Source of the DNA: Anthoceros angustus
Lineage: Eukaryota > Plantae > Anthocerotophyta
Length of the DNA stretch: 64,000 nt
Assembly (NCBI GenBank): GCA_010909165.1
Contig: VJWM01000025.1
Location: forward strand, 744,001-808,000
Direction: 5' to 3'
Under the pieces are notes generated by a model. It saw nothing but the letters and a program-made list of their open reading frames with translations, made no database searches and was not told the DNA's origin. Below, one piece after another: positions 2,342-47,565 of the stretch (its first letter is position 1; the number at the start of each line of letters is the position of its first letter). A program made the translations under genes and the position numbers.

Positions 2342-5074
2342 CTAGCAGGGCAGAGGTCTTGGAAGACGTACAGGTTTCCTGTTTGGTCTGAAGTCTTCAT
2401 AGCCTGGAACAGGAATCTGCCACGTGCGATCTGCCGATGAAGATGTCATCAGTGAAGATTGTGTACACTACCAATACCCATCACCAACTTACTGCAATGA
2501 CACTTCTGTGATGCTCAAACATTCTATTACTTAGAGGCAATAGGACATCGTCTACGTCCAAGAGGCCAGCCTTCCGATGTTTCGCCATGTCGCAGCTAGA
2601 GCGAGCTACCTGCCAAAAAACACTACTTGGACGATCAGACAAAGGAGTCAACCATCACAACAGGACAACATGAACATCACAGACCATTTTCAACCCAGGT
2701 TTCTCCTACCGTGTCAATAAAATGGTCTACAAATTCCAGTAGGACATCTTCTGCATCCGGATCCAATTCCTCCAATGGATCAATCTACAAAAATACAACC
2801 ACCGCGTCACACTTATAAAGTGCTACAGCTTAGTGAGGAGCAGAACTGAAAGCAGGAGGGAAGCCAACTCACTTCTGCAAGCAGCTGCTGTACTCGGCGC
2901 TTGCCAAGAGTCCGTCGCTCAGCAACAGGGGGTTGACCACCCAAAGGCGTGCCAGGTTGGACAGCAGGTTTAGCAACGGGCGAGGGCTGCAACCGAGGCT
3001 GCTGAGGCATGTGCTGTGAAACCAAGGAGTGATATGACACATATCCTTGTGCAGGTGGTGGCTGGGTCTGTGGGGGCAGGTGGGATGATGGGACCTGAAG
3101 TTGCGATTGCGAATGGGCTTCTGACATAGTAGAGGTCTGGGATAGAGGCTGGGGCGCTGACAACTGCTGGGATGGAGGGGCCAGATGAGTCATAGACACT
3201 GACTGTTGCAGCTGAGTAGGAGGGTGGGACTGAAACTGTCCTTGAGGTAGTCCCTGTGACACTGGCGAGCTCCCGAACCCATGGTTTGAGGTTAGATACT
3301 GCTGGTGCAGAGAAAGGTGGTGTTGCTGGTGCTGCACAGACTGTTGTCCCCCTGTTGGCCTCTGCATCCCATACTGTGCTTGATACGACGGTGAAGGAAC
3401 ACCCTGCTGCTTTGAAACCCATTGCTGTTGCTGCATGCTCTGCTGAACGAGGTTACCTGTCATGCTGAACGGCTGCATTGAAGAAGTCAACGCCTGCATT
3501 TGGAAGGAAAGGGTAATCACCTCAACAGTCAGCATAGGACCATGTTTCATGAACCAGCAGGTCGAATTAGGCAGGCATACCGGAGACATGGCAGACTGCT
3601 GCTGCTGCTGAAATTTTGGTGCAGAGTGCAGAATCCGCTGTTGCTGTGGCTGCTGCTGGGCAATATTTCCGGCTGGCCTAGAAGGCTGGGGGCCAGAAAG
3701 CGAAGCTCCCATGGGTTGCATTCCCTGATAGGTAGATCCCACGGACTGCATTTGTGGTGGCATGCTTGAGGACTTCATCCGCCCCTGCATTGCTATCACC
3801 AGGCATCACGTAAGAATGTAGAAGGCAGGTGCTGGAGCTTGTTGTGTAGGTCTCAAACGTGAGGTGGAGCAGGAATCCCTCACATGGATTCCCTCGGTCA
3901 TGAGGGCGTGTTGAATCAAGACGCTCGCAAGGCACCCTAAGGGGTATTCCGGCAAGCAAATGTAGCGTGCATGCATAAGTTTTGTCAAAGCCTAGAAAAG
4001 TTCCATCCAAGGTGGTCTGGCATGAAGACACGGGACGCACCTGAAGATTTGTCTGTTGCGCTGCACTAGGCTGCTGAGGCTGCATGCCAGGCATTTGCTG
4101 TTGTGCATTCGGCATGGACATCATGGGCGGGGGTTGCCCAACACCTTGACCAGATACTGCTGGCAAGCCTGCGGTTGTGAGTGAAGTTTAAACCCCATAT
4201 TGCTGTTGCATTATGATAAAGAATAACAGCCTGTTGTGGGCTGACTGATGTTTACTGAAAGACTGGAATAGTTGCTGGAGTTGCATAGTATGAAAGCTGA
4301 CCTGGTTGAAGGCTGCTTTGCGAGGCCCTTTGTTGAGCAGTGACAAGCCCCTGCTGCTGCATGCTAACCTGTGTACCTCTGGGACCTACATGCTGCGGCT
4401 GTTGGCCGGGATGCATTTGTGGGCTGGACACCAGCCCTCCTCCCGAGGGGGAAGAACCCAATTGGTACAAGCCTGAGACAAAACAAGAAAAGGACCAAGC
4501 ACTAAGTGGAGCAGGAATGGGATCGTGAAGCCACTACACACCCAAGAGGAGCTCAAAACCCTCACACTGATTTCTACGAATATCAATACTACAGAGTCTG
4601 CAATATTGACATGTACTTCCCAGGACGACATGACACAGGTGTACCAAGTCAGAAGGGGAAACCTGAAGGGTTGTAGCTCGACGTAGCCATCTGCGCCAGC
4701 CGCTGTCCGGATGCCGTGCGGGTAAGCCCATGTACCACCTGAGGCCCGCTCAAATGCATTGCCTGCTGTTGAGATGCTGCCATGGGCGATCCCTGTCCGG
4801 AGTGCAGAAATCGGGTATTCGGGTGCAGCTGGGGCCTGAGCGTGGGAATTCCTTGCTGCGCCTGTTGCTCAAGGAGCGCCTGGGCCTGCTTCTGCTGCTG
4901 CTGTTGCAGATGACTCTGGCCTCCATTATGGGCTAGTAACACACCTGCTGATGACAAATTGCTTTCGTCCAAATTGGATTCTTGTTGCGCATGATCTCCA
5001 GGGTCTTGTGGCAGATTTTGTACTTGCCCGGCATTGGAATTTGGCTGACCACCAGGCTGCAGCTGTTGCTGCAT
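2342..5074 (-). CDS. TAF12: TFIID subunit TAF12 (Gln-rich N-terminus, C-terminal histone fold); multi-exon, 3' end uncertain
   Basis: Spliced exons give RTLGKRRVQQLLAE / IDPLEELDPDAEDVLLEFVDHFIDT (exon 2710-2784) / VARSSCDMAKHRKAGLLDVDDVLLPL / RTWQIPVPGYEDFRPNRKP, matching the plant TAF12 histone fold. Q/P-rich upstream exons start at ATG 5074. Confidence 0.88.
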
Positions 5075-8167: not shown

Positions 8168-8645
8168 CACTTTTCCACCAATTTGTACCATATTCCATGT
8201 ATGTAACCAAGTTCCAGCCAGAGGCACCTATTTTCTGCAAACTGGTTGGCCCACAGCACGATGTATGATGTATACTGAGCAGTGCAGTGTTTACGCAGCA
8301 CCAGAGGTCTTTTATGTTTGCCTGCCTGGAACACTACTAGTGACATGGTGGCACGACGTGAACCAGACTATGCATCACGCAGCTGCATTTCTACTCGCAA
8401 GGAAAGAAGAGATTGAGAAACTCGGAAGCATCACAAGTGCGTGAATAAGTGTATAACACCAACAGTTTCTCAAATGTTCATCTTTCCTCAGCTGACTGAC
8501 TTTGTCAACGATGCACTAGCCACAAAGGAGCCGCAATATAATTAACCCCAAAACAGTGGAAGCCCCCTCACCTCACCTCACTTCCCCTCTCACCCAGCCT
8601 ACCCGCAGGTTATAAGCTTAGCCTCCACCTTCCTTCCATGCTAAC

Positions 8646-11600
8646 TTATACCAGCACACCGTCAGTCACAAGTTTGATACCCAGCCGATGATTCAAGTGC
8701 CCATTTTGCGAAAGGGGGCTTCCACTCATGTGTATGCTCATGTGTCCGCTCGACGCATTGCCATCCTTCGAAGCTTGCTCTATGTGGCCATTTTGTGAAT
8801 CTTTTGCGCGGATGGCTTCCTCCCATGTTTTCTGCATGAATTCCCTAGTAACTGCTTCCCTTCCATTTCCGTTATGGAGTCCCTCCCTGCCCTGGGCATT
8901 GTGTACGTGGAGCGGCACAGGAGCACCACTATGAACTGACTCTTTCATGTTGCCACCCTCTGATGAGTGACGGTTTGGCAAAGAGTCTCTACCTTGCCTG
9001 TTCTGAACCACTTCCCTTCTGCGTCCATTTTCATTTTTCCTGGGTCCCATGTCATTGGCCTCTTCTCCATGCCCGTTCTCCCGACTGTAGCCATACAGGC
9101 CCGTGTGGTAAGCGGTCTTAGGCTGCCCGGCGAGCTCGTCTTCCTTGCTTTCTCCATTGCCCGCCTCACCATGGATCTCCACATGTGAATTTCCAGGCGC
9201 CTCGTTCACATCCTGAATACAGTGGGCCTCTTCCATGTGCCCATTGGAATACTCCGGGGACAGGTGCTTGTCTGCACATGCTTGGTCTGCATTGCTCCTT
9301 ATACCAGCTTCTGATTTAGATAGTGGATTGAGTTCCACGTATCTGGTGGAACTTGACTCCTTGGCGTACTCAGCTGAAATGGTGTCCCTCCCCCTTGGAG
9401 ATCCCTTGTCACTCATATCACGGCTAGGGCCTCTCTTATGAGTCTCTTTGAGGTGACCATTATCCCTCGTGACCATGATGTCCTTCAAATGTCCATTTTC
9501 CTTAGCATGCCCATTCTCCTTGGAATGCCCGTTCTCCTTGACAAGCCCATTCTCCTTGACAAGCCCGTTCTCCTTGACAAGCCCATTCTCCTTGACAGGC
9601 ACGTTCTCCTTGGCATGCCCGTTCTCCTTGGCATGCCCGTTCTCCTTTGCATGCCCACTCTCCTTGGCAAGCCCGCTCTCCTTGGCATGCCCGTTCTCCT
9701 TCACAAGCCCCTTCTCCTTCACAAGCCCATTCTCCTTGGCATGCCCGTTCTCCTTTGCATGCCCACTCTCCTTGACAATTCCATTCTCCTTGACAAGCCC
9801 ATTCTCCTTGACAAGCCCATTCTCCTTGACAAGCCCATTCTCCTTAGAATGCCCATTCTCCTTCACATGCACACTGTCCTTGAAGAGACCGCTCTCCTTG
9901 ACATGCCCATTCTCTTCCTTGGCATGCACACTGTCCTTATATTGACCGTTCATCTTCACATGGCCGTTCTCCTCCTTGGCATGCCCGTTCTCCTCGGCGT
10001 GCCAACCTTTCTTCTCCCCGTGCCAACGGTTCTCCTCAACGTACCCCCCGTTCTCCTTGGCTTGCCTCTTCTCCTTGGCTTGCCCCTTCTCATTGGAATG
10101 CCCGTTCTCCATGGCGTGCCCGTTCTCCGTGGCGTGCCCGTTCTCCTTAGCATGCCCATTCTCCTTAGCATGCCCATTCTCCTTAGCATGCCCATTTTCC
10201 TTCGCGAGCCCTTTCTCCCTGGCAAAACCATTGCCGTTGGCGTGCCCATTTTCTTTCACGTGCACATGAGCATAGCCATTCCCATGTTGAGATGCCTCTT
10301 GTTTGGTAGCAAACACCGCCTTTCCTACAGAAGGACTTACTGCAATACGAGTTATTGAGCTGCTTGCTTGTTGGCTCGTGTCTAGCTGCCCAGATGCAGC
10401 CCGGATCAACCCTGCAACACACAGCCCAAACGGAGAATCTTGCTGATGAGTAAGACTGTCCATCAACAAAACATACGGCAGCAAGATTCCCTTCAGCAAA
10501 AACACACCTAGGAAAGGTGCAGAAGGATGGCCCGGCCGTGAATTGAATTCAGGATGAAACTGGACACCTACATAAAATGGATGCCCTGAAAGCTCAATAA
10601 TCTGGACACAAGTGCGATGGTCAGATGATTGCGATCCAAGGGAAAACTCGAGTATCAACTATCCAAAAACCGCTGCAAAAAAGTATGACTTCTCACCTCC
10701 ATCCGTTGTCCCGACTCGTCTTTGCCCACAAATTCAAGGCCTGCATTTTCTAGACTGTCCACCAACTCAGGATTGACCTGAGCAGAAAGTAAAGCCGAGT
10801 GAACTGCCGGCAACGGACCAGAAATGCTATGTAGGATGGATGGCAATGTCAAGGAATCCACAATACCTCATATCTATGGCGATGACGCTCATCGACGTAC
10901 TTTTGCTGCTTCTGATCATCATAGAACAGATGGTTCTCATACCTACAAACCCATACAGCAGAACTAGTCACAAAAAAGGAAGAGCTATGTCGACCCTTGC
11001 AATGTACTCAGTTCTCGCATGGCATTGATGGACAACTAGAAAGCCGTGACGAGACTCACAGTCTTGAAATCTTGGAGTCAGGCTTCTGAATGTAGGTCCT
11101 CCGAGATCCCAACCTCATGGTCCCACCCATTTGAGTAGTCGAGTGCTGCAGAAATCCTGAGAGTTTAGTGGACAAAAGCAGACGGCATACCATGTGATTG
11201 TCTGCCACAGTCCAAGAACCACGTTTTGGGCTTATGCTTTGAGCTAGTAGGTACCTCTGGCATGGATATAATGCATGGGTGTGTGGCTGACCCATCAAAC
11301 TCAGTGCTGTTTGCATTTGCTAAGCCCAGAACCTGCAAACACATGTCAGCAGCCATCTCAGAATTGGGCAATTAGGGTTTACCAAGTTTTAGTCTACCCA
11401 GTTGATTTCCGCCAACAACAAAGAGACTCTACATGTTCACTTACCGATCGAGCAAATTCAATCACTGCAACTTGCATCCCGAGACAGATGCCCAAGAAAG
11501 GAGTATGTGTCTGACGAGCATAGTTTACTGCCAAGATTTTTCCTTCGACGCCCCTGGGACCAAAACCTCCTGGAACTAAGATACCATCTACTGCCTGCAA

Positions 11601-14538
11601 ACGCGCAGATTGCCAATTTGATTACACAGGGATGGAGTAAACCAGAAATGTACACACTAAAATTTTTTGGCCTGCTGACACGTTGCCCAAAGAAGAGCTC
11701 ACCTTCAGAGTGTCCCAAGCTTCAGCATATGCATCTGGAGCCTGCACGGTACACATGAAGGTAAAATAAGATCAAGCAAATCCTATCATTTTAGAGCTAC
11801 TGTGGAGGTTCTGCTCATGGGACCAACCGTTTCTCTCGTTTCTTCCTCCAAATTAGTAGCCAGAACCCACTTAAGCACCAATTTCCTGGAGCATGCAATA
11901 GATGCATGCAAGAGGGCCTGCACGAATAACAAGATCAAGGTTCCGCTGATGGATGAAGCACATGCCACCATAGAATGCTCGCATAAACACGTCAAGCCCT
12001 TTTGTGTATAATACCTTGATAACAGACAAATAGGAGTCTGCAAGACCTGTATACTTGCCAACCATAGCAATGGTGACAGGGGTTGAAAGCTTGTCAAAAG
12101 CATCTGCCCTGTTGGTCCAGTCATCCAACAGAGGGTGGTGAACGACACTGCACAGACATATCACCCATAATGAAACTGCATAAGAATGAGACGGAACAAT
12201 ATACGCTTCACTTTGGAAAACAAAGTAAGGATAGCTAGTATGAGGTCCCAAGCACTGGGGGCTTCAGGACACCAAAGCAGATTAATTCAAGCAGATAGAC
12301 ATACGTCAATTTTAGCTGCTGCAGGATTGCTACATGTGCCTTTTGATCCTGCATATAAAACAAGAAGAGACCCACAAGCTCAGTACTTCAAAGCAGTTAA
12401 CCACCGCACCCTGACTCTCAAGCTCTACAATTCTGTCGGCATGATATCATCAAGAACTATCTGCTTGAAATTTTGTTGAGACCAACCTTCAGCAGTAAGG
12501 GGATGTGCCAAATATTAGACACGTCATGAATGTTCACTATATTGCTAGCCTGTTCCAAATATCACAGCAAAATTGAGTCAGCTACAGTTCTGAAGAAGTT
12601 CACTCATGACAGATGAAGTACTCTTAAAGCTGAAGCCCTCGTTGGCACTTACTGAAACATGACAAAACATGGAGAGCTTCTCCTTTGTTGATTGCTCCAG
12701 GGGCTGAAAGCAACACAAGGATATATCAGAGGGAGCCCGAGAAAACATCCAGCAGAGAATAACTCGGAGCAGTTTGTTCACTCACTTGGGCACTCCTGCA
12801 TGCCAGGAGGTGCGGAGGAAGACCTAACGCTCTGAGGTCTCTGACACTGTGCTGCGTTGGTTTGGTTTTCTGCATTTGCCCAGATTATAAATCAGTGCAT
12901 ACATCTAACTTCCTGTGGCTACGTGAAATAAACTGCAGAGCAATTGGCATACCTGTTCCCCAACCACATTAATGACAGGGATCAAGCTCACATGCACTAC
13001 GCAGAAATTATCCTGGCCTGCAAAGCGACGATGTCAAAATGGACCTTCCAACCTCATGATGAGATGACAGTTGAGATGTTAACAAGAATGAGAAACTTGT
13101 GATTAGCCAACAGCTGCCAGCAATCAGTCAACTCACCCACTCGAAGCTGCAACTGCCGGAGTGCCTCAATAAAAGGGCCTGACTCAATATCTCCTGCAAA
13201 ACATGTAACAAAGACAAATTGGTATCTGTAATGAAAAAAGGTAAGGACAAACAATCTCTCCACGGTACTCGACAGACAGTAGAAAGCCTTTGTGGTAGAG
13301 CAAAGAGCCTTCTCGAGGGATGGAGAAGGGTAATACCAACAGTGCCGCCAAGTTCGATCACACAAACATCTGCAGGACCTTCCTTTCCATCAACCGGGAT
13401 TCTTGCAACACGCTCTATCGAATCCTGGATTTCATCTGTCACATGTGGAACGACCTGTTGCAAAAGTACGAGGGCACATTAGAAAGCTGTGACGTGAATA
13501 ACGAGGAATCCTGCCTGGGTTCAAATTCTCAGATCCAACAAGCTCACCTGTACGGTCTTCCCCAGGTAATCACCTCGGCGTTCTTTGTCAATGACCGCCT
13601 GTACGCAGAAAAAAAGTGTACATGTAGCAGACCGAGTCACAGAGAGAGAGGCCCAGATGCATCATTTGGCACGGCAAGTTCCAGAAAGCCAAGAGATGAC
13701 CAACCTGGTAGACTTTCCCAGTAGTTATGTTGTTGTCCTTCGTCAGGGTGATGTTGAGGAAGCGTTCATAGTTCCCGAGGTCCAGATCCACCTAGCCAAT
13801 GTTTTGGACATGGTCAATTACAACTCAAAACCGCCAGGAACACAATGCCTAGCAAAATAAGGTGTCCTGGCGACCTCCTGGGTGAGAAGAGCTACCTCGC
13901 CGCCGTCGTTGAGAACATAAACTTCCCCATGTTCGTACGGTGACATGGTTCCTGCATCGCTGTTGATATACGGGTCTGCGCAACAAACACTTAAGCAACA
14001 TCAGCGCCCACCTCAAGAGACAATCGCCAGAAGGCACTAAAGACGCGCCACGAGAGGGATTCCGACTCCCGGCCTCAACACCGACAAAATGGATCATCCC
14101 CGAGCCTACAAAAGGACCCAATTGGCCCAAGCCTGTAGAGGAAAAGCAGCCCCGATTGGGCGCCCTCCCGATTCCAAGCCCAACACGCAGCACCCAGCAG
14201 CCAGCAGCGACAAGGTAAAGACGCCAGCTCAAACACCCAGCAGAAAAGTCAGGCACTTGAGCTGCTCGCACCCAATTCCCAATTACAAGCCACAAACACA
14301 AGACAAGCACAAAGAGAAGCCCCGCATTGTACAGATCCCACCCAAATTGACACCACAGGAGAGCAAGGCCGGGGAGCGGGGCCCAAGATGGAGGCTGCTG
14401 CACGCAAGAGGAGAGCCCACCTATTTTAATGGACGTGACGCGGTAGCCGCATGCCTGCAGCACAGCTCCCAGGCTGCTGGCTGTGACGCCCTTGCCGAGC
14501 CCGCTCACCACCCCGCCTGTAACCAGCACATATTTCAT
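8646..14538 (-). CDS. CTPS: CTP synthase, many exons, with ~580-aa repetitive C-terminal extension
   Basis: Motifs [101 protein letters not shown] and [15 protein letters not shown]. Last exon 10411-8646 is open throughout. Confidence 0.97.
9490..10260 (-). repeat. Coding 18-bp tandem repeat (KENGH/KENGL hexapeptides) inside the CTPS last exon
   Basis: Plus-strand units such as CATGCCCGTTCTCCTTGG and ACAAGCCCATTCTCCTTG repeat with 18-bp period, varying mainly at codon-compatible positions. Confidence 0.95.
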
Positions 14539-15212: not shown

Positions 15213-15298
15213 GAGGCGAGGCGAGGCGAGGCGAGGAGAGGCGAGGCGAAGCGAGTCGAGTCGAGTCGAGTCGAGTCGAGTCGAGTCGAGTCGAGTCG
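15213..15298. repeat. Compound pentanucleotide microsatellite (GAGGC)n(GAGTC)n upstream of CTPS
   Basis: Directly visible GAGGC run followed by about 9 TCGAG units. Confidence 0.95.
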
Positions 15299-26010: not shown

Positions 26011-29000
26011 TCACCAGGATGACCCGTAATTTGCATAGGAAGATGGGTTTGATCGGTGCATGCCGTTATGACCCGGAGCACCCCAGCCAATAGGCATCCC
26101 TGGCATTCCTGGCATAGATGGCCTGCAAGACCCCACGAAATTCATCAACTCAGTCAGTCCATGGTGGACCTGGGCAAGCCTTGACGTGTGGTAGTGCTAG
26201 TCAGGGCTTGTAAGCGGAAGGATGGTGTACACAAGATAAGAAACATGGCAGCAAGAGCTTGAAGGAGACAAGCTTTGTTTACCTTCTGGCTGATATCTGC
26301 CGGACATCTCTCCAGGCAGGCGAGCTTCTGAATCTTCCATGAGAACCGTGTTGCAGCATTCCAGAGTTGGGCAATTCTCTGGAAGTGCTTGTTGGACGGG
26401 GGGAAGGGGTGGGCCAAGATGGAGAGGAAGGAGTGAAGACATCACGGTCCGGTCTTTGGTACACCTCTCTGGAGGCTTGAGGGGCACCAGGGCTGCTCAA
26501 CCTGCCTCCACCGCGGGGAGAGTAGTTTGGGTCGGGTCTCTGGGGAGAACATATCTGCCATGTCTTGCCACTGATGAAGAAGTTCACTCCTGACGGAGGG
26601 CTGTCCCAGGGTTGCACACTTCTGGGAGCAGAAGAAGCGTAGCTGCTGCTGCTGCTGCCTCCTTGGCCTGCGACCGCTGCCGCAAGAGCTGCTGCCTGGT
26701 AAGACATGGGATCTGAGCCGTAGTCCATCATGGGTGCTTGCGTCTGCAGGGGCGTCTGCATCTGCCTGCTGCCGTAAGGCTCACCCTGCCTGAATGCATC
26801 CTGCTGCTGCTGCTGCTGCCTGCTGCTGTAGGGCTCACTTTGCCTGAGTGCATCCTGCGTCTGCTGCTGCCTGCTGCTGTATGGCTCACTTTGCCTGAAT
26901 GCATCCTGCGCATGCTGCTGCCAGCTGCTGCTATAGGTGCTGTAAGCTGGGTGGGTTTGGCGGTAGGAAGGAGGATTGAGATTGTTGTGCCTATAGGAAG
27001 ATACAACTTCCGGGGTAGAGGCAGCACCGAGCTGGAAGTGAGGGGGAAGGGAGGGGTTCTTGGCATGGCCTCCGTACCTAATGCTGGCGGCTGCAGCTGC
27101 AGCAGGCGACCTCTGCTCCGGGGAATTGAGCTGGAACTTGGGCGGGATGCCGTGGAAGCGATCCGGAGAAGTGGCAGGCAGGTGCAGGGGGGAGTCACTG
27201 AGCTGCCGGTCCAGCAACCTAGCGTTGCTGCTGCCGGGGGTGCCGGGGGTGCCGGGGGTTCTACCATACCGGATGGGGGACACCACATTCCCCATAGATG
27301 GACTATGCGGGGAGCCCGCAGGCTGCTGGTGGTAGATGGGCGACTTCCTCATTCTCCTTCCCGGAGAATGAGACTGCCTAGGAGAAGCCCTGTTGTGCAA
27401 GCCTCCTGGAGACCTCATGGACGAAGGACTGAAGGGAAAGGGAAAGGGGAATGGAGAAGATGGATCTGGGCTGTGCATCCCTCCTTTTGGGCTGTCCGCC
27501 TTCCTGGTGTCCTTGGAGGATCTGCTGGACCTGGCGGACCTGCCCCTGTCCCTATCCAGATGCACGGCAGCCACTCCTTCCACAATGCTGGGCAGTTCCA
27601 GCTTCCAGGCGTTCCTGAAGCAGTAAGCCGGAGGGATCCTGTACTGGGCTCTAGCAACCTTGGCTGCCATCTCGTCGCGCAGCAGCTCCTCCTCCGTCCG
27701 ATAAGCTGTCAGCTCATTGTAGCGTCCCAGCCCCAGACTCACCCCCAGGTGGTGCCCAGAAGAGGAGAAGCTGGAGCGGGCGCTGTCTGGGAAGCTGTAC
27801 CTGCTCATGCTGTCTTGCCTGCGCAGGTCCCCGCTGTGGCTGATGCTGCTGCTGCCCTTTTTCATTTCCTGCGAGTAGTCCGAGTCCCACCCCGAGTCCT
27901 GCGGATTGATCTTGCTCGACCTGTTGGTGCAGCCCATGACGATGAGGCCATGTGACTTGGTGCAGCGCAGGGAGCCGCAAATGGAAGGCCTGTTCCCCTT
28001 GGCAGACTTCTTGGACTCCCCCTGGAGATGCCTCTTGGCGGCCGCCGCCTTGAGGCAGCAGCACTTGCAGGCCGGGTAGGAGGGGCCCCATGCCAGGTTG
28101 GGGTCTGCAGCAAGGAGCAGCATCAGCATCGGCAGGACAGTCCAATTCCGGGATTAGAGATGCAAACAGGCTGGATTTAGTCCAAGTCCGGAGAACACGA
28201 GCAGAAGCAGGAGGGATGGATGCAGCAGGAAGAGGACATGTCTGCAGATGCTCCAGGAAGAGGAGCAGGAGGAGAAGCAGGAGGAATGGATGGATGCAGC
28301 AGGACAGTCCGGTTCAGAGTTCAGAATTCGGCGAAGTCCAGGAACAGGAGCAAGAGGAGCAGAATGCATACCAGAGTCGGTGACGCTGTCAGGAAGCAGG
28401 CGAGGCAGGGGCACCAGGTAGTAGACCCGCCCACTCTCCAGCTCGGCATCCAGGGGCAGAATCCGGCCTCTGTCCGCCCTGGGAAGCTGGAAATCGATGG
28501 AGCCGTCCTCGCTCCCGACGTCGCTCTCCAGGTCCGACTGCCCGTCTCCTCCTCGTCCTCCTCCCCGGGGGATGTGCAATGGGGACATGCCACCACCATA
28601 GCGGCCGCTTCCGAATCTCGGACTCGGGCTGCTCCTGCTGCTGCTGGGCTTGGGGGACGAGAATCTGCCGAGGGTGAGAAGCCGTTGCATCGGGGAGGCC
28701 AGAATACCGCCCAACACGTCCCGCCTTTCCGACTTGGAGCGACCCAGAAAGCGGCGCATGATGGGCGACCCCAAGGCGGACATGAAGGAGGAGGAGGAAG
28801 AGGCGCTGCCGCCGCTGCTGTTCCGGCTCCATTGCTGCTGTTGCTGCTGCTGATGCTGCTGCTGCCGAGAAGCGTCGCGGAAGGAGGAGCTGAAGCTGCG
28901 CCGCGCGGGCGAGGCTGTGAAGGAGTTGGTGTCGGATCTGTCGTCGGAGGTGCAGGAGTCGGTGTCGAAGGAGCCGTCGTCCACGTCGAGGGCGGAGGAC

Positions 29001-29287
29001 AGCTTCAGGTTGGTGAGCCGGGACTGGTGGAAGACGAAGTCCTTGGGATTTCCCTCACACACCAGATGGTGAGGGTGGGATGTGTGCGCCAGCAGGTCCC
29101 CTGCAGTCATGCTCCATAGCTCCGGGAAGCGCAGCAGCTGCCCGTCCGCAGTCAGAACCTTCAGGGTCGTCCCTGTGCTGTTCCCCCCGCTTCCTGGGTC
29201 GACCACCCCCGATCCCCCCAGGCAGCTCCCCGGCCACAGCCCCCGGGCCAGCGCAGCGTGCCCTCCTCCTCCTTTCCTAAATTTCAT
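26011..29287 (-). CDS. DUF4228/PADRE-domain protein with very long disordered Ser/Pro/Gln-rich C-terminus (~950 aa)
   Basis: LKVLTADGQLLRF..TAGDLL..HPHHLVC and RILPLDAELESGRVYYLVP match DUF4228. A phase-matched GT-AG intron (28371-28105) joins the next long ORF, which contains AWKLELPSIVE; intron 26282-26123 leads to stop at 26011. The start could lie further upstream. Confidence 0.72.
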
Positions 29288-31101
29288 CCTCCTTCCTCCC
29301 TTTCTGCTGCCGTAGCCCTGCCCTGCCTCTCTCACCTCGACTTCCTCACCATCTCCAGGCTATGGCTGCCCAGCCCTGCCCTGCCCTGCCCCGCCCTCCG
29401 CCTCCTCCTCCTCCACCTCCAGTCCTTCCCTCCCCCACTCTTCCACATGCACTGCTCCTGCTCTGAAGCTTCCTTTGCTTGCAATGCCTTAGCCTTGCCT
29501 TCCCTTGCTGTGCAAATGCCTTTCACAATGCGTTGCCCTCCCTCGGTCTGCTTGCCTTGCTGGGCAAAGGCAGTACCTTCCCCAATGCCTCGCCCTTGGC
29601 TACCTCCCTACACTGGTCTCGTGCAGATCTCCTACTACATCAGCGCATAAGGGCTGGACCCATTGAAGCGGCAGCAGAGGCGGCGGATCCTGGAGCCTTC
29701 CTCCTCGCCGCTGCTGCCCTCCTTGTCCGTCATGGATCCACAGGAAGCACACAATGTCAGCGTAGTCACTCACAAGGAGGAAGCAGCGGGGAAGAAGCGC
29801 GGATGGTGGGCGGCGGCGGGAAAGAGAGGCGGGCAAGGACTGAGGGCCTCAAGAGGGGAGGAGGAGCAGCATCGGGGAGCGTGCCAGCAGCAGCAGCCGG
29901 GAGAGGCAAGGAAAGGAAAAGAAAGGAAGGACAGGGAAGGGAGGAAGGCAGGCAGGCTATGGAAAAGCGAAACGGAATGGAATGGATGGGAAGTTGGACG
30001 TGAGGAGGGACGTTTGGTGGAGTCGAAGTGGAGTGAAGGAAGCGGGCGGGGAGTCGGGGACGCGAATCCAAAGGCGTGGCTGCCCCAAGTACATACATTG
30101 ACTTTGGCAAGCCGGGGGCAGGGGGCAGAGGCAGAGGCAGAGGCAGGGGCTGTGTAGCAGGGGTCCACACACTCGGAATTTGACGCAATTAAGTTACATA
30201 AATAAGTAAGGAAAAGGGGAAAACCGACGGAGGGGTCCCGGGAGAATGGAATATGGAATAGGACGTTGGGGCGGTGGCCAGGCTTTGGATTAATAAGCGG
30301 CAGCGGCCCTGGCTCGCCGAATGGAATGGCGGGAGGTGATTGATGAGCATTGAATGCGGAGAGCGGTGGGCCCGCGGGGCCCCGCCGCGCCCAGCCTAAT
30401 CATGCTTCATGCGCGGGGCCGCCCTAATCATGCCCTAAATTTGGACGCCCGCATGCACCACGCTGCGCGCAATCATGGCGGGCGCGCTGCCGTCACGCCT
30501 CATTTTGTCAACCTTTTTATTTACGCGGCCGCGCTTTTGGTTTCTTTCCATTGGGGCGGGACCCCCGGCCTTCTTTTCACATGCGGCGGATCCGGGCCAT
30601 CATCACGGGCCTGCTCTGCTCTCCCCTCCCCGCGCTGTCTGGATCCTGGTTCGGGAATTCGTGCTCGCGTAACCCTAACGCTACTCCTAATGCGAGCAAG
30701 GCTCCCAAAACCCTAATGAAGCTTTGTCTGTCTTGCCCTTGCCCTAGCCGTGAGCCTGGGTCTCCTGAATTAATCTCATCAGCTTGCCTGCATGCGCTGA
30801 TTCCGGCACTTGTCTCATAGCCTGTTCACATAAAGAAAACCACAGCGCAGTTCGTCCTGCCCAGGAAACTGCGCAGCTTCCTTGCTCACCGGGCTCACCT
30901 AAATTAAGCTGTCGTCGATCCACTCTGCGCTTGTCACTGTGACTGCGGCCAGACTCCGTAGTCGCAGTGTCTGCATACCACCGCGCTGTCAACCGTGCAC
31001 CATCCCGGGTGATCAAAATGCACCGAGATGTTTTGTGCTGCATTAAACAACCCAAGATCTTCCAACTAGCCGTACCAAGCCGCTTTGTGCCCTAGAAAGC
31101 T

Positions 31102-40213: not shown

Positions 40214-43200
40214 GAAAATCGCAGGTCGGCGCACTATGTGCAAGTAGCCATGGCGGGCGCTGGCCGGCCGGCGCCCTAGGTGCAAATGGCCGTGGACGGC
40301 GTGGGCCGGGCGCCTGGCGGAAGCGGTGAGCGTGGTGGCCGCCGGCCGGCGCCCTAGGTGCGAGTGGGCTGTGATAGGGGCTGGCCTGCCGCAACTTCCG
40401 CGGCGGTTCCTTGTTTGACCGCGGCCAATCTTTAAATATTTGGAAAAATATAGACACGCAATCGTGAGCAACTTCTTGCAGAACGCGCATATATGACTAA
40501 ACATCGCAACAAGAGTTATGTAGAGCTAGATAAGTATATTCTATTGGCGATTGATGGAATGGATGAGAAAAAGATGGAGATCCCGCACATTTTGAGGTGG
40601 CCAAAGAACTTGGATGAGGAATGCCGCGTTTCAGTTCATGTAGTGGGGCACAACTACACCCATAAGGTGAGAGTTTTTTTACACTATGCCAACCTCCGGA
40701 ATGATGCGAATTTGACTATTAGCGTCATACAAGATGTTATCCACAACTATGATGGTGTCTTGCCCAAGGTTCTTTATCTGCAGCTGGACAATACATGCCG
40801 TGAGAACAAGAACCAGCTACTATTTTCGTATCTCAACATGCTAGTGGACATGAGCACATTTGAGAAGGTGAAGGTGGGCTTCCTTCTAGTTGGCCACACT
40901 CACGATCAAATTGATCAAATGTTTTCATGCGAGAAAGAGATTGTTGTCATTGTGGAGAATAACATCGGGCTAGTGCTGGAGCGTCCTTGGAAGTGGTTTT
41001 CACGTGCAAAAGTGGAGCATACAGCCCGACCACTTCAAATGCTGGATGAAGCTTTGCTTGATGAGGCATTATTGAGGATCTCCACGCGTGATATGTACTT
41101 GAGGCATATCAAAATGCCTAAGGCAACATTGGGAAATACCGCCGATGAATGGGCCCATAACAGAAATCCGGAAGGGGATGTCTCTGGCAATGCCGTGCAC
41201 CACGGACACGCATAACAGACCATTCTGGATTGGGGAGGTCATTGATGCGAAACTAGATGCACCACGATCTCACTTTCTTATCCATTGGTATCAGACCGAG
41301 CACACAAATGCGTACGAAGGGAGATATGTGTAGGAATACATAATCGGTCAGAGTGCCAACCCATCTGATGTGATGCTGAGGAACAAAGGGAATAAGGTCC
41401 ATGACCCAAAAAACATACATGAGGTGTTTGTGAATGAAACAGTCATCCTGTATTATGGGTTTGTGTTGAAATATTTGTATGCGGTGGACAAAAAAGCAAT
41501 AAAGAATAAGCTCAGTGAGTTTCACGGCTTCATATAGCATGCGAATCAAAGTGCACATGAAGATAATGATGACAATGCTGGAGAAGCTGGACCAAGTGAT
41601 GACAAAGGATTGAACTCTGGGAATGAGTGAAACTTAGATCATGGATTGTCTCGGAGTCCCATACTGAATGCTCTACGTCTGCTTCCAGACGTTACCATGT
41701 TTTGGAGATACCCTGTCCGTGGCTTTTGTTGTATTCTTATTCAACTACATTTTCCTTCTGGAACCACGAATTTACGGTGGTCCCTTCCGCGAAATGGCTT
41801 CCCTTGGACCCCTTGAAAAGCTTGAACGCAAAGAAGCGCACACGCCTGCTGGCACACATTCTCAAATATGCCTACACACCATCACCGATGTGAAAGTGTT
41901 GTGAAGTCCCGATTTTCGGACATATGTATGGTAGAAAGGCGAGGAGATAGCAGTAAGTTTGTTGCACACAAAATTGAACAATCTATCGTTCCAGCACTAG
42001 TTCAAAATTACGCGAGAGGAGAAACCCGACTTCTGCCTTGTCATTGTCATCGAGCAACAAGATGCAATATCCCGCCTGGGAAACTAAAGTCGACAATAGG
42101 TGAAGTCCAATTTGATAGATTAGAGACTATTGATATAGACCCTCGCCCAATTATTCTTTGATTTGATAGAATTTTGTGAAGAAGCGCCAACAAAGGAAAG
42201 AAAATTGTAGAAAATCGCAGTCGGCGCACTATGTGCAAGTAGCCATGGCGGCGGCGCCTAGGTGCAAATGGCGTGGGCCAGCGGTGGTGGCGCCTGGCGG
42301 AAAAAGGTGGTGGCCGCCGGGCGCCCTAGGTGCGAGTGGGCGTGATAGGCACTGCCGCAACTTCCGCGGTTCCTTGTTTGACCGCTGCCAATCTTTAAAT
42401 ATTTGGAAAATATAGACACGCAATCGTGAGCAACTTCTTGCGTAACGCATATATGACTAAACATCGCAACAAGAGTTATGTAGAGCTAGATAAGTATATT
42501 CTATTGGCGATTGATGGAATGGATGAGAAAAGATGGAGATCCCACATTTTGAGGTGGCCAAAGAACTTGGATGAGGAATGCCGCGTTTGAGTTCATGTAG
42601 TGGGGCACAACTACACCCATAAGGTGAGAGCTTTTTTACACTATGCTAACCTCCGGAATGATGCAAATTTGACTATCAGCGTCATTCAAGATGTTATCCA
42701 CAACTATGATGGTGTCTTGCCCAAGGTTCTTTATCTTCAGCTGGACAATACATGCCGTGAGAACAAGAACCAACTACTATTTGCGTATCTGAACATGCTA
42801 GTGGACATGGGCACATTTGAGAAAGTGAAGGTGGGCTTCCTTCTAGTTGGCCACACTCACGATCAAATTGATCAAATGTTTTCATGCGAGAAAGAGATTG
42901 TTGTCATTGTGGAGAATAACATCGGGCTAGTGCTGGAGCGTCCTTGGAAGTGGTTTTCACGTGCAAAAGTGGAGCATACAGCCCGACCACTTCAAATGCT
43001 GGATGAAGCTTTGCTTGATGAGGCATTATTGAGGGATCTCCCACAGCGTGATATGTACTTGGAGGCATATCAAAATGCCGGAAGGCAACATTGGGAAATA
43101 CCGCCGATGAATGGGCCCATAACAGAAATCCGGAAGGGGATGTCTCTGGCAATGCCGTGCACCACGGACACGCATAACAGACCATTCTGGATTGGGGAGG

Positions 43201-44064
43201 TCATTGATGCGAAACTAGATGCACCACGATCTCACTTTCTTATCCATTGGTATCAGACCGAGCACACAAATGCGAAGGAGATATGTGTAGGAATACATAA
43301 TCGGTCAGAGTGCCAACCCATCTGATGTGATGCTGAGGAACAAAGGGAATAAGGTCCATGACCCAAAAAACATACATGAGGTGTTTGTGAATGAAACAGT
43401 CATCCTGTATTATGGGTTTGTGTTGAAATATTTGTATGCGGTGGACAAAAAAGCAATAAAGAATAAGCTCAGTGAGTTTCACGGCTTCATATAGCATGCG
43501 AATCAAAGTGCACATGAAGATAATGATGACAATCGGAGAAAATTTGGACCAAGTGATGACAAAGGATTGAACTGGGAATGAGTGAAACTTAGATCATGGA
43601 TTGTCTCGGAGTCCCATATCGAATGCTCTATCGACGTTACCATGTTTTGGAGATACCCTGTCCGTGGCTTTTGTTGTATTCTTATTCAACTACATTTTCC
43701 TTCTGGAACCACGAATTTACGGTGGTCCCTTCCTGGCAGAAATGGCTTCCCTTACAGACCCCACTCGAAAAGCTTGAAACGCAAAGAAGCGCACACGCTG
43801 CCTGCGTTGGCACACATTCTCAAATATGCCTACACACCATCACCAGATGTGAAAGTGTTGACAGAAGTCCCAGATTTTCAGACATATGTATGGCCGAAAA
43901 GGCGAGGAGATAGCAGGCAGAAGTTTGTTGCAGCTGTCAAAAAATTGAACAATCTATCGTTCCAGCACTAGTTCAAAATTACGCGAGAGGAGAAACCCGA
44001 CTGCTGCCTTGTCATTGTCATCAGGAGCAAACAGTATGCAATATCCCCGCTCTGGGAAACTAAA
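40087..44064. repeat. ~2.0-kb tandem duplication (second copy starts at about 42085)
   Basis: AAAGTCGACAATAGGTGAAGTCCAATTTGATAG occurs at about 40089 and 42086; both copies end at GGGAAACTAAAG. Confidence 0.92.
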
Positions 44065-46074: not shown

Positions 46075-47565
46075 ATGTCAAGAACGGTGGTTCCGTGTAG
46101 ACGTCATCCCATGGGGAAGGTTGCCAACAGAGCAGCAGCAGCAGGGAGCGGGCAAACTCGGCGCTGCCGCGTCCTGCTGCTCCCGTTGCTGCTCCTGTTG
46201 CTGTTCGCAACTGGCATCGTCTCCTTCCACAACGCCGGAATTGCAATTCAGGAACATCGCGCTTCTGCAATCGCGGGTGCGGGAGCAGGAGGGGAGGAGG
46301 AGGAGGATCACAACAATCCCTTGAATCTGCACAGCAGCATCTCCATCTTCGTCTACGACCTCCCGCCTTCCTTCAACAGGAATTGGCTGCACGACGACCG
46401 CTGCAGAACGCATCTCTTCGCTGCGGAAGTGGCGCTGCACGGCATCCTGGAAGGCAGCCCCGTCCGCACTTTGGATCCTCGCCGTGCCGACTTCTTCTTC
46501 CTCCCGGTCTATGTTTCATGCAATTTCAGCACCAGATCTGGATTCCCGTCCCTAGGCCGCGCTGCGCAGCAGCTACGCGCGGCTGTCAACCTCGTCTCGC
46601 ACCGGCATCCTTACTGGAAGCGCAGAGGCGGCAGGGACCACATCTTTGTTGCGACTCACGACTTCGGCGCCTGCTTCCATGCATCCGAGGCTGCGGCTGT
46701 GGAGTCCGGGATTCCGCAATTCTTGTCCAAATCCATCATTTTGCAGACCTTCGGACAGCAAGGCCGGCATCCCTGCCAGGATCGCTCCCGCTCCGTCCAG
46801 ATCCCGCCGTATGTGCACCTCGACCCCCGGACACAGCAGCTGCCGCAGCCGAGCCCGGCCAGGGACATCTGGGCATTTTTCAGAGGGAAGATGGAGCTGC
46901 ATCCTCGCAACACAACCGGAGGCGGAATCTACAGCAGGCAATTCCATTCCTCCTTTCCAATCAATCAAGCGCCTTCTTGCATGCAACTGTCTTACAATTT
47001 TCTCCGATTCACATTGTGAAGCAGCAACATCTCCTCTTCTGTAGCTTACATGCATGCAGGACTGTTGAAAGTTTGCTGCAAAGTTTTCTCACAACGCTTT
47101 TGCTTTGCACAAATCGGCTGCAGGGGAGTGCGCACTACCTTGTGGCAGAAATTCGGCCACGACAGACGCTTCTTCATCAAACGCAAGAGGTCGGATGATT
47201 ACCAATTGGAGATGCTCCGATCCATATTTTGCTTATGCCCGCTGGGATGGGCCCCCTGGAGCCCTCGGATTGTGGAGGCTGTGATATTCGGTTGCGTGCC
47301 GGTCATCATCGCGGATGATATTGCCTTACCTTTCTCACAGGTTATCGACTGGCCGCGCATCTCCTTAAGGATACCAGAGAAGGATGTCCACCTTCTGGAC
47401 AAGGTATTGGAAACTATCACCTCCACCAACTTGTCCGCAATTCAGCGCGAGCTATGGAAGCCCTCCAACAGGCGGGCTCTCTTGTACAATAATCCCTCCA
47501 TCGTAGGCGATGCCTCATGGCAAATTCTTGACCACCTGTCCACGCTGAAAGCGTCCCAATCGTGA
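46075..47565 (+). CDS. IRX7: Exostosin-family GT47 glycosyltransferase, IRX7/FRA8/F8H-like (xylan synthesis), 2 exons
   Basis: N-terminal TM anchor; motifs IFVYDLP, HLFAAEVALH, VRTLDP..ADFFFLPVYVSCNFST..GFPS, DHIFVATHDFGACFH, AFFRGKMELHP and FCLCPLGWAPWSPRIVEAV; intron 46938-47123. Confidence 0.92.

Follow-up and report, generated by a model that had tools for sequence, protein, structure and literature searches.

How does an enzyme of central nucleotide synthesis come to carry a tail about as large as its own catalytic part, and is such a tail translated, old and of any use? The question is raised by a CTP synthase (CTPS) gene on the minus strand of a 64,000-nucleotide stretch of the hornwort Anthoceros angustus (GenBank assembly GCA_010909165.1, contig VJWM01000025.1, positions 744,001 to 808,000; this whole stretch is called the window, and its own coordinates are used throughout), in which the last exon runs on through a coding tandem repeat and far beyond it. 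Polymerisation of CTPS is known from every domain of life, and the enzyme serves as the model for metabolic filaments (cytoophidia). Arabidopsis CTPS3-5 also form filaments, but their role is unclear, as are the mode of assembly and the purpose of plant CTPS filaments in general (PMC8960734). A natural, enzyme-sized disordered CTPS tail kept across a deep evolutionary split is an extreme case on which ideas about the control of assembly by tails can be tested. We consider it highly probable that the tail described here is a real, translated and ancient disordered extension in which a tandem array has grown recently. With more reserve, we favour on balance the reading that an ancestral disordered tail has overgrown, has acquired the array and tunes the assembly or the solubility of CTPS.

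Results

The CTP synthase gene and its last exon

The catalytic exons lie at 10497..14538 on the minus strand, as judged by tblastn with a cotton CTPS (P0014, 561 aa), Pfam and sequence motifs. Colinear exon pieces cover residues 1-544 of the cotton protein without a single stop inside the aligned pieces; exon 1 starts at 14538, and SAPFLG closes the penultimate exon at 10508. Searched exon by exon, the Pfam domain CTP_synth_N was matched by exon 1 (14419-14538, E 1.4e-13) and by the exon at 13334-13463 (E 3.3e-9), and GATase by 11442-11600 (E 1e-15), which contains the nucleophile motif GICLGMQ, and by 10497-10607 (E 3.2e-5). The translations of the open reading frames (ORFs) show both GICLGMQ and HRHRYEV. 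The N-terminal amidoligase domain with its P-loop and the C-terminal class I glutamine amidotransferase domain with its Cys nucleophile and His-Glu motif are present, every part in order and uninterrupted in the separate exon pieces, and by these domains and motifs the minus-strand gene is an intact CTP synthase.

The last intron (10412..10507, minus strand, 96 nt, GT..AG, phase 1) was placed by reading the sequence; its acceptor AG is at 10413-10412 and the last exon starts at 10411. The splice junction rebuilds PFLG| and the end of the glutaminase domain, which fits the plant CTPS pattern PFLGLI.A..GQL (in cotton PFLGLILSAKGQLE). From this point the last exon (8646..10411, minus strand) holds 588 codons and a stop (8646-8648), that is, the end of the glutaminase domain and a tail of ~577 residues. 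These are the final 588 codons of a minus-strand ORF of 670 aa at 8646..10658, and the in-frame segment 8649-10409 (minus strand, 587 aa) was the reference for all tail statistics. The catalytic part closes near residue 550 in cotton numbering, so that the whole protein would reach ~1,130 aa, a length estimated from the separate exons and not from a joined model.

A sequence-only reading of this locus had described a CTPS doubled in size, which agrees with a core of ~550 and a tail of ~577 residues on the same estimate. It had let the last exon stay open for about 588 codons from 10411, and we obtained identical coordinates. Its count of 35-40 repeat units was a fair one beside the 28 canonical units and ~42 unit lengths described below, and the ~270 non-tandem residues with scattered NGH and QNG motifs that it placed after the repeats correspond to 280 codons with nine Asn-Gly dipeptides.

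A repeat without stops proves nothing alone, because one antisense frame is also open inside the array. The ORF on that strand (9438-10358, plus strand, 306 aa) was rejected as a gene, as the repeat is stop-free there and the ORF ends with the repeat. The distal, non-tandem part of the tail (8649..9488, minus strand, 280 codons, delimited by stop counts and by BLASTP to the second long tail described below) is hydrophilic, and NGH and QNGH motifs are dispersed along it. It has no stop in the CTPS frame and 9-16 stops in each of the other five frames, so the open frame is not a matter of chance; none of 20,000 shuffles stayed open over this part. In total the frame is unbroken over the 768 bp of the array and the 840 bp that follow.

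A second long tail and the age of the extension

Relatives of the tail were sought by a representative protein search with the 670-aa ORF as query. Among the best 150 of 607 matches the sole true tail relative was P0077 (611 aa), encoded on one genomic contig of 8,975 bp from Logan run SRR33208241 (L001). Other strong matches, with P0049-P0062, P0092, P0094, P0135 and P0160 among them, were unrelated repeat proteins and were rejected as tail relatives. L001 carries a CTPS gene with an exon order identical to that of the window, and its last exon reads GLVAAASKQLEKF and then continues for ~625 further open codons, with no in-frame stop in the tail vs 9-44 stops in the other frames. The two tails are colinear and 31% identical over 447 aa (E 7e-24), and their non-repeat distal parts, compared by BLASTP, are also colinear and 28% identical over 250 aa (E 3e-9). 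There is no tandem array in L001, where scattered NGH and NGY units stand at the position of the array.

The exons of the two genes are 72-83% identical in DNA while the introns do not align. In the core exons the proportion of nonsynonymous differences (pN) is 0.065 and that of synonymous differences (pS) is 0.68, which is saturated; the pN of the tail is 0.45, about seven times that of the core, as expected of disordered regions. No shared genes were found downstream of CTPS in the window and L001. With synonymous sites saturated and introns unalignable, a neutral frame of 600 codons would have been lost in both lineages, and its survival over such a divergence therefore points to a tail kept translatable by selection. 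Since both the frame and the similarity at the protein level are conserved, the tail is evidently translated, at least at times. From the comparison of the two genes we can also conclude that the ~600-aa tail predates the split between the window and L001 lineages, and that the array is a later expansion in the window lineage and not the origin of the tail.

A short block 3' of the tail stop is conserved in both species. It lies at 8497..8538 on the minus strand, ~110 nt beyond the stop, and aligns by blastn (alignment A2) to positions 6846-6887 of L001, ~195 nt past the stop there, with 83% identity over ~42 nt. Its place downstream of the tail stop in both species fits a 3' untranslated region (3'UTR) that starts after that stop, of which it is a probable element, and it may be a conserved regulatory one. 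Inside the block stands GTTGACAAAGTCA, whose L001 counterpart forms the perfect inverted repeat GTTGAC-AAA-GTCAAC.

The tandem array

The coding array occupies 9489..10256 on the minus strand, ~42 unit lengths of 18 bp, and was characterised by Tandem Repeats Finder, a unit table, a pattern search and self-offsets. Tandem Repeats Finder reports an 18-bp unit in 41.5 copies with 75% matches at 9489-10250. The consensus 18-mer occurs 29 times with at most three mismatches, always on the minus strand and between 9504 and 10256, while 0.06 occurrences are expected from shuffles. The best self-offsets are 18, 36, 54 and 72, which marks a plain 18-bp tandem. In the protein the array corresponds to tail residues 52-307, again ~42 hexapeptide lengths, in which 28 in-frame units match K-[ED]-[NSK]-[GV]-[HLIP]-[AVSL] and the remainder are degenerate or seven-residue variants. 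Two unit subfamilies are present, KENGHA and KENGLV, frequently with three identical copies in a run; towards its middle the array is degenerate, with 21-bp variants such as KEENGHV. All length variants in the array are multiples of three (18 or 21 bp).

Searches with the tail outside CTPS gave little. Pfam on the tail ORF found GATase alone and nothing else up to E 1, a PDB sequence search with the tail found no relative, and the ESM Atlas gave no usable match to it. Word-index protein searches, which cover proteins of 0.55-1.75 times the query length and leave fragments outside their reach, returned no match for the non-repeat tail alone and, for the whole tail, two low-complexity and unrelated ones, the pyridoxal phosphate (PLP) enzyme P0001, whose KENG repeat is short, and the Ulmus NTF2-RRM protein P0002; with the CTPS end as query they returned angiosperm CTPS of 460-663 aa and no others. 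The single locus returned by a metagenome scan with the tail alignment, L002, encodes an enzyme of PLP type that is unrelated and has a short KENGVV/KENGLV repeat at its C-terminus.

It was observed in passing that short (K/E)ENG-[LVFH]-x hexapeptide repeats end PLP-dependent enzymes of the Cys/Met-metabolism type (L002, 6453-8177, plus strand, metagenome contig Ga0247778_1000450; P0001 from Logan) and also stand mid-protein in the Ulmus minor NTF2-RRM protein (P0002). The presence of KENG-type repeats in such unrelated proteins looks like convergence of low-complexity sequence.

Ordinary plant tails

The tails of 15 ordinary plant CTPS are 21-72 aa long, in agreement with the earlier statement that such tails are normally short, and in representative matches that cover the CTPS end 12-72 aa separate GLI.A.. 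from the stop. Short tails are found, for example, in Ensete, Musa, Forsythia, Gossypium and Daucus, and in P0143, P0165, P0194, P0076, P0072 and P0064; Arabidopsis CTPS1-5, known from the literature, belong to the ordinary kind as well. All 15 of them contain Asn-Gly, 39 dipeptides in total while 6.5 are expected from composition, and they often finish in motifs similar to NGNG[LVI]H, such as NGNGLHV. The same enrichment is present in both long tails: 40 Asn-Gly vs 7.1 expected in the window tail, with nine vs 2.4 +/- 1.4 in its 280 post-array codons, and 21 vs 5.3 in the tail of L001. The long tail thus looks like an ancestral Asn-Gly tail enlarged about tenfold, to which a recent minisatellite burst was added in the window lineage. 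No description of Asn-Gly enrichment in plant CTPS tails was found in the literature searched, and the enrichment is a simple and testable lead.

Composition, disorder and a conserved helix

The 587-aa tail consists of 12.9% Gly, 11.9% Glu, 9.7% Lys, 9.4% Asn, 8.2% Ala and 7.8% His (46 residues), with 82 Lys and Arg vs 87 Asp and Glu, an isoelectric point (pI) of 6.9 and a grand average of hydropathy (GRAVY) of -1.23. Its mean scaled hydropathy of 0.364 is below the charge-hydropathy boundary of 0.416, on the disordered side. AlphaFold2 gives a mean predicted local distance difference test score (pLDDT) of 36, with 564 of 587 residues below 50 and coil everywhere except for one helix, although low confidence is partly expected from an input alignment (A1) of two sequences. 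By composition and prediction together the tail belongs to the intrinsically disordered regions, and the charge-balanced, His-rich and disordered tail of the sequence-only reading is borne out.

The predicted helix spans tail residues 517-548 (8766..8861, minus strand), with block pLDDT values of 72 and 61 vs 30-40 elsewhere. It is also the best-conserved block between the two tails, and W529, E531, R534-A535-K536 and Q539-N540-G541-H542 are invariant in the alignment. The computed net charge of the window tail changes from -4.4 at pH 7.5 to +19.5 at pH 6.0 and +35.9 at pH 5.5, and that of the L001 tail from -7.9 to +12.3 and +26.0 at the same pH values. Among the chemistries proposed earlier for this tail, a pH-titratable charge is the only one with a computed basis.

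Discussion

A possible role in assembly or solubility

It is known that tails take part in CTPS polymerisation. In the filament of human CTPS1 the weakly ordered C-terminal tails of neighbouring tetramers touch, and CTPS2 is regulated by its C-terminus (bioRxiv 10.1101/770594). The variable surfaces that serve CTPS filament interfaces include the tails at both termini (PMC12219555), and in yeast assembly is switched by protonation of one His on acidification of the cytosol (PMC8641951). The His of the animal filament interface (human H355 in RYHEAW) is replaced by Ala in the window gene (AYAEAW, 11700-11743, minus strand), in L001 (AYASAW, 3381-3424) and in cotton P0014 (AHAAAW, residues 350-357), and so the contact His of the animal and yeast interface (H355 in human, H360 in yeast) is lacking in the window gene and in the other plant sequences compared. 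This suggests that plant CTPS may assemble through other surfaces, of which the tail is possibly one.

The reading that we favour could work in the following way. A coding minisatellite of 18 bp grew to ~42 units, with slippage in replication or unequal exchange as the most likely mechanism. As CTPS is a tetramer, four tails of ~577 residues would form a His-titratable polyampholyte brush around the enzyme, and the reversal of charge near pH 6.5 would alter the interactions of the tails with each other and with the core. Hornworts undergo drying, and such a brush could tune filament formation, bundling or condensation, or solubility, when the pH or the water status of the cytosol changes or when the plant dries. 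For docking, the conserved helix close to the tail end offers a candidate site. A role of the tail in assembly or in response to pH is put forward tentatively. A more specific version, which we hold to be doubtful, would make the tail a conserved, disordered hornwort CTPS module that is titrated through His and switches the enzyme between soluble and assembled states on changes of pH or hydration, with Asn-Gly followed by a hydrophobic residue or His, common to all plant CTPS tails, as a plant-specific short linear motif not described before and multiplied about tenfold here.

Several observations weigh against the favoured reading. Only one other long-tailed species was found among the matches listed, and the absence of the array from its gene means that the array need not be functional. 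The low identity of the tails fits weak constraint beyond composition and length. The repeat number rests on a single assembly. Exact-sequence look-ups with ORFs of the window species gave no match, and a complex prediction of the helix peptide (window 8730-8897, minus strand) with the heterologous cotton CTPS P0014 scored 0.00, which is neutral on binding.

Other explanations of the tail

In the main rival reading the tail would be a tolerated passenger, translated but with no specific role, a disordered end that leaves the enzyme undisturbed, drifts in length and carries a neutral array, which stays in frame only since frameshifts would give harmful ends. Much of the comparison is compatible with this: the two tails are just 28-31% identical at a pN of 0.45, no known domain matches the tail, the array is specific to one lineage, with scattered units alone in L001, and the high identity of its units together with the runs of identical ones indicates a recent expansion. 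On the other hand, a frame of ~600 codons has been kept in two lineages with saturated synonymous sites, and pure neutrality would permit early stops, because 21-72 aa of tail are enough for an ordinary plant CTPS to work. Conservation extends to the Asn-Gly enrichment, to one helix and to a pI near 6.6-6.9. A mere passenger is rather unlikely in our view, and if it is true the locus would still make a clear case of a coding minisatellite that grew within the gene of an essential enzyme.

Whether the working enzyme carries its tail is a separate matter, as alternative splicing, early polyadenylation or proteolysis could remove it from most transcripts or proteins and leave a CTPS of normal size. 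The hexamer GTAAGT stands 23 codons into the last exon (~10340) in phase 0 and could serve as a donor, yet it fits only 6 of 9 donor-consensus positions. A simple consensus scan, crude and not trained on hornwort introns, found the window tail free of donors with 7 or more of 9 positions and both purine-rich tails, those of the window and of L001, free of pyrimidine-rich acceptors; L001 has no equivalent strong donor. The conserved frame and protein similarity, and the conserved block 3' of the tail stop in both species, also speak against such a removal, which we regard as improbable.

Two further chemistries had been proposed from the sequence, in which His/Glu units bind Zn, Cu or Ni, or deamidation at the ~40 Asn-Gly sites marks the age of the enzyme like a clock. 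Of all dipeptides Asn-Gly deamidates fastest, and dehydrins rich in His are metal binders. The 46 His usually have a Glu three residues earlier in ENGH units, and Asn-Gly is 5-6 times over-represented both here and in other plant CTPS tails. However, ~10 of the 28 canonical units are of the KENGLV type, where Leu or Ile stands instead of His, which shows that His is not required in the unit; the Cys/His clusters of known metal sites are absent and Pfam finds nothing. Either chemistry is more improbable still. Least probable of all is an artefact in which misassembly of noisy long reads gave a wrong unit number or frame, although tandem arrays are prone to collapse or expansion in assembly, given that the frame is intact through the 768-bp array and 840 bp beyond, that all length variants are multiples of three and that an independent assembly of another species also has a long in-frame tail, so that the unit count is at most in doubt.

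Neighbouring sequences

The 5' region of the CTPS gene is GC-rich (59%) and holds, ~700 nt upstream of the start codon, a (GAGTC)17 microsatellite (15213-15298). Two ordinary plant genes stand near CTPS, one with a PADRE domain (ORF 28157-29335, minus strand, E 3.9e-9) and one with an Exostosin GT47 glycosyltransferase domain (ORF 46075-47016, plus strand, E 8e-35). Between 26279 and 28129 on the minus strand there is an ORF of 616 aa with no Pfam match and a 51/54-bp tandem repeat of ~3.5 copies at 26752-26932. Two ORFs on the plus strand, 2 kb apart, match DUF7869 (40493-41212, E 1.8e-33; 42600-43322, E 1e-32); they are probably copies or fragments of one gene and possibly related to a mobile element.

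Comparison with known systems

Repeats of six residues suggest the Hexapep transferases, with which the tail has a six-residue periodicity in common and nothing more. The [LIV]-G-x4 pattern is not present in it, and a left-handed beta-helix was rejected, as there is no profile match to Pfam Hexapep up to E 1 and AlphaFold2 predicts no strands. Proteins of the late embryogenesis abundant (LEA) and dehydrin type were rejected likewise, since the tail has no K-segment and no LEA or dehydrin match in Pfam. The usual criteria for hydrophilins are more than 6% Gly together with high hydrophilicity. In composition alone the tail, with 12.9% Gly, a GRAVY of -1.23, many charges, disorder and abundant His, resembles hydrophilins, LEA proteins and His-rich dehydrins, but unlike these it is fused to an enzyme and not free-standing.

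Closer in position are the tails of human CTPS1 and CTPS2 and of yeast Ura7, which are also disordered, fast-evolving and placed after the glutaminase domain, and in human CTPS1 the tail controls activity (bioRxiv 10.1101/770594; PMC12219555). These are ~30-45 residues long and act via phosphorylation, whereas the tail in the window is more than ten times longer, built on repeats and titratable through His. The nearest oddities described are short extensions and insertions, those of Toxoplasma CTPS among them (PMC5874296), and no paper on a long or repeat-bearing plant CTPS tail was found in the literature searched. The array itself behaves like other coding minisatellites in disordered regions, with a unit that is a multiple of three, high unit identity, runs of subfamilies and a copy number specific to the lineage. 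It differs from them in its host, a central nucleotide-synthesis enzyme known to polymerise, and in its place within a long conserved tail.

The closest resemblance is to ordinary plant CTPS tails, which share with the window tail the position after GLI.A..GQL[DE] in the last exon, the enrichment in Asn-Gly, the common His and Gly and the NG-[LVIH] motifs near the end. Their length of 21-72 aa, in comparison with ~577 residues here, and the lack of a tandem array set them apart, and the conserved helix of the window tail is not seen in them. Long disordered tails grown by repeats are common, and the undescribed system announced by the sequence-only reading was an overstatement for what amounts to a single enzyme whose disordered tail is enlarged. 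The locus presents an enlarged tail of the regulatory type on a known enzyme, and not a new system.

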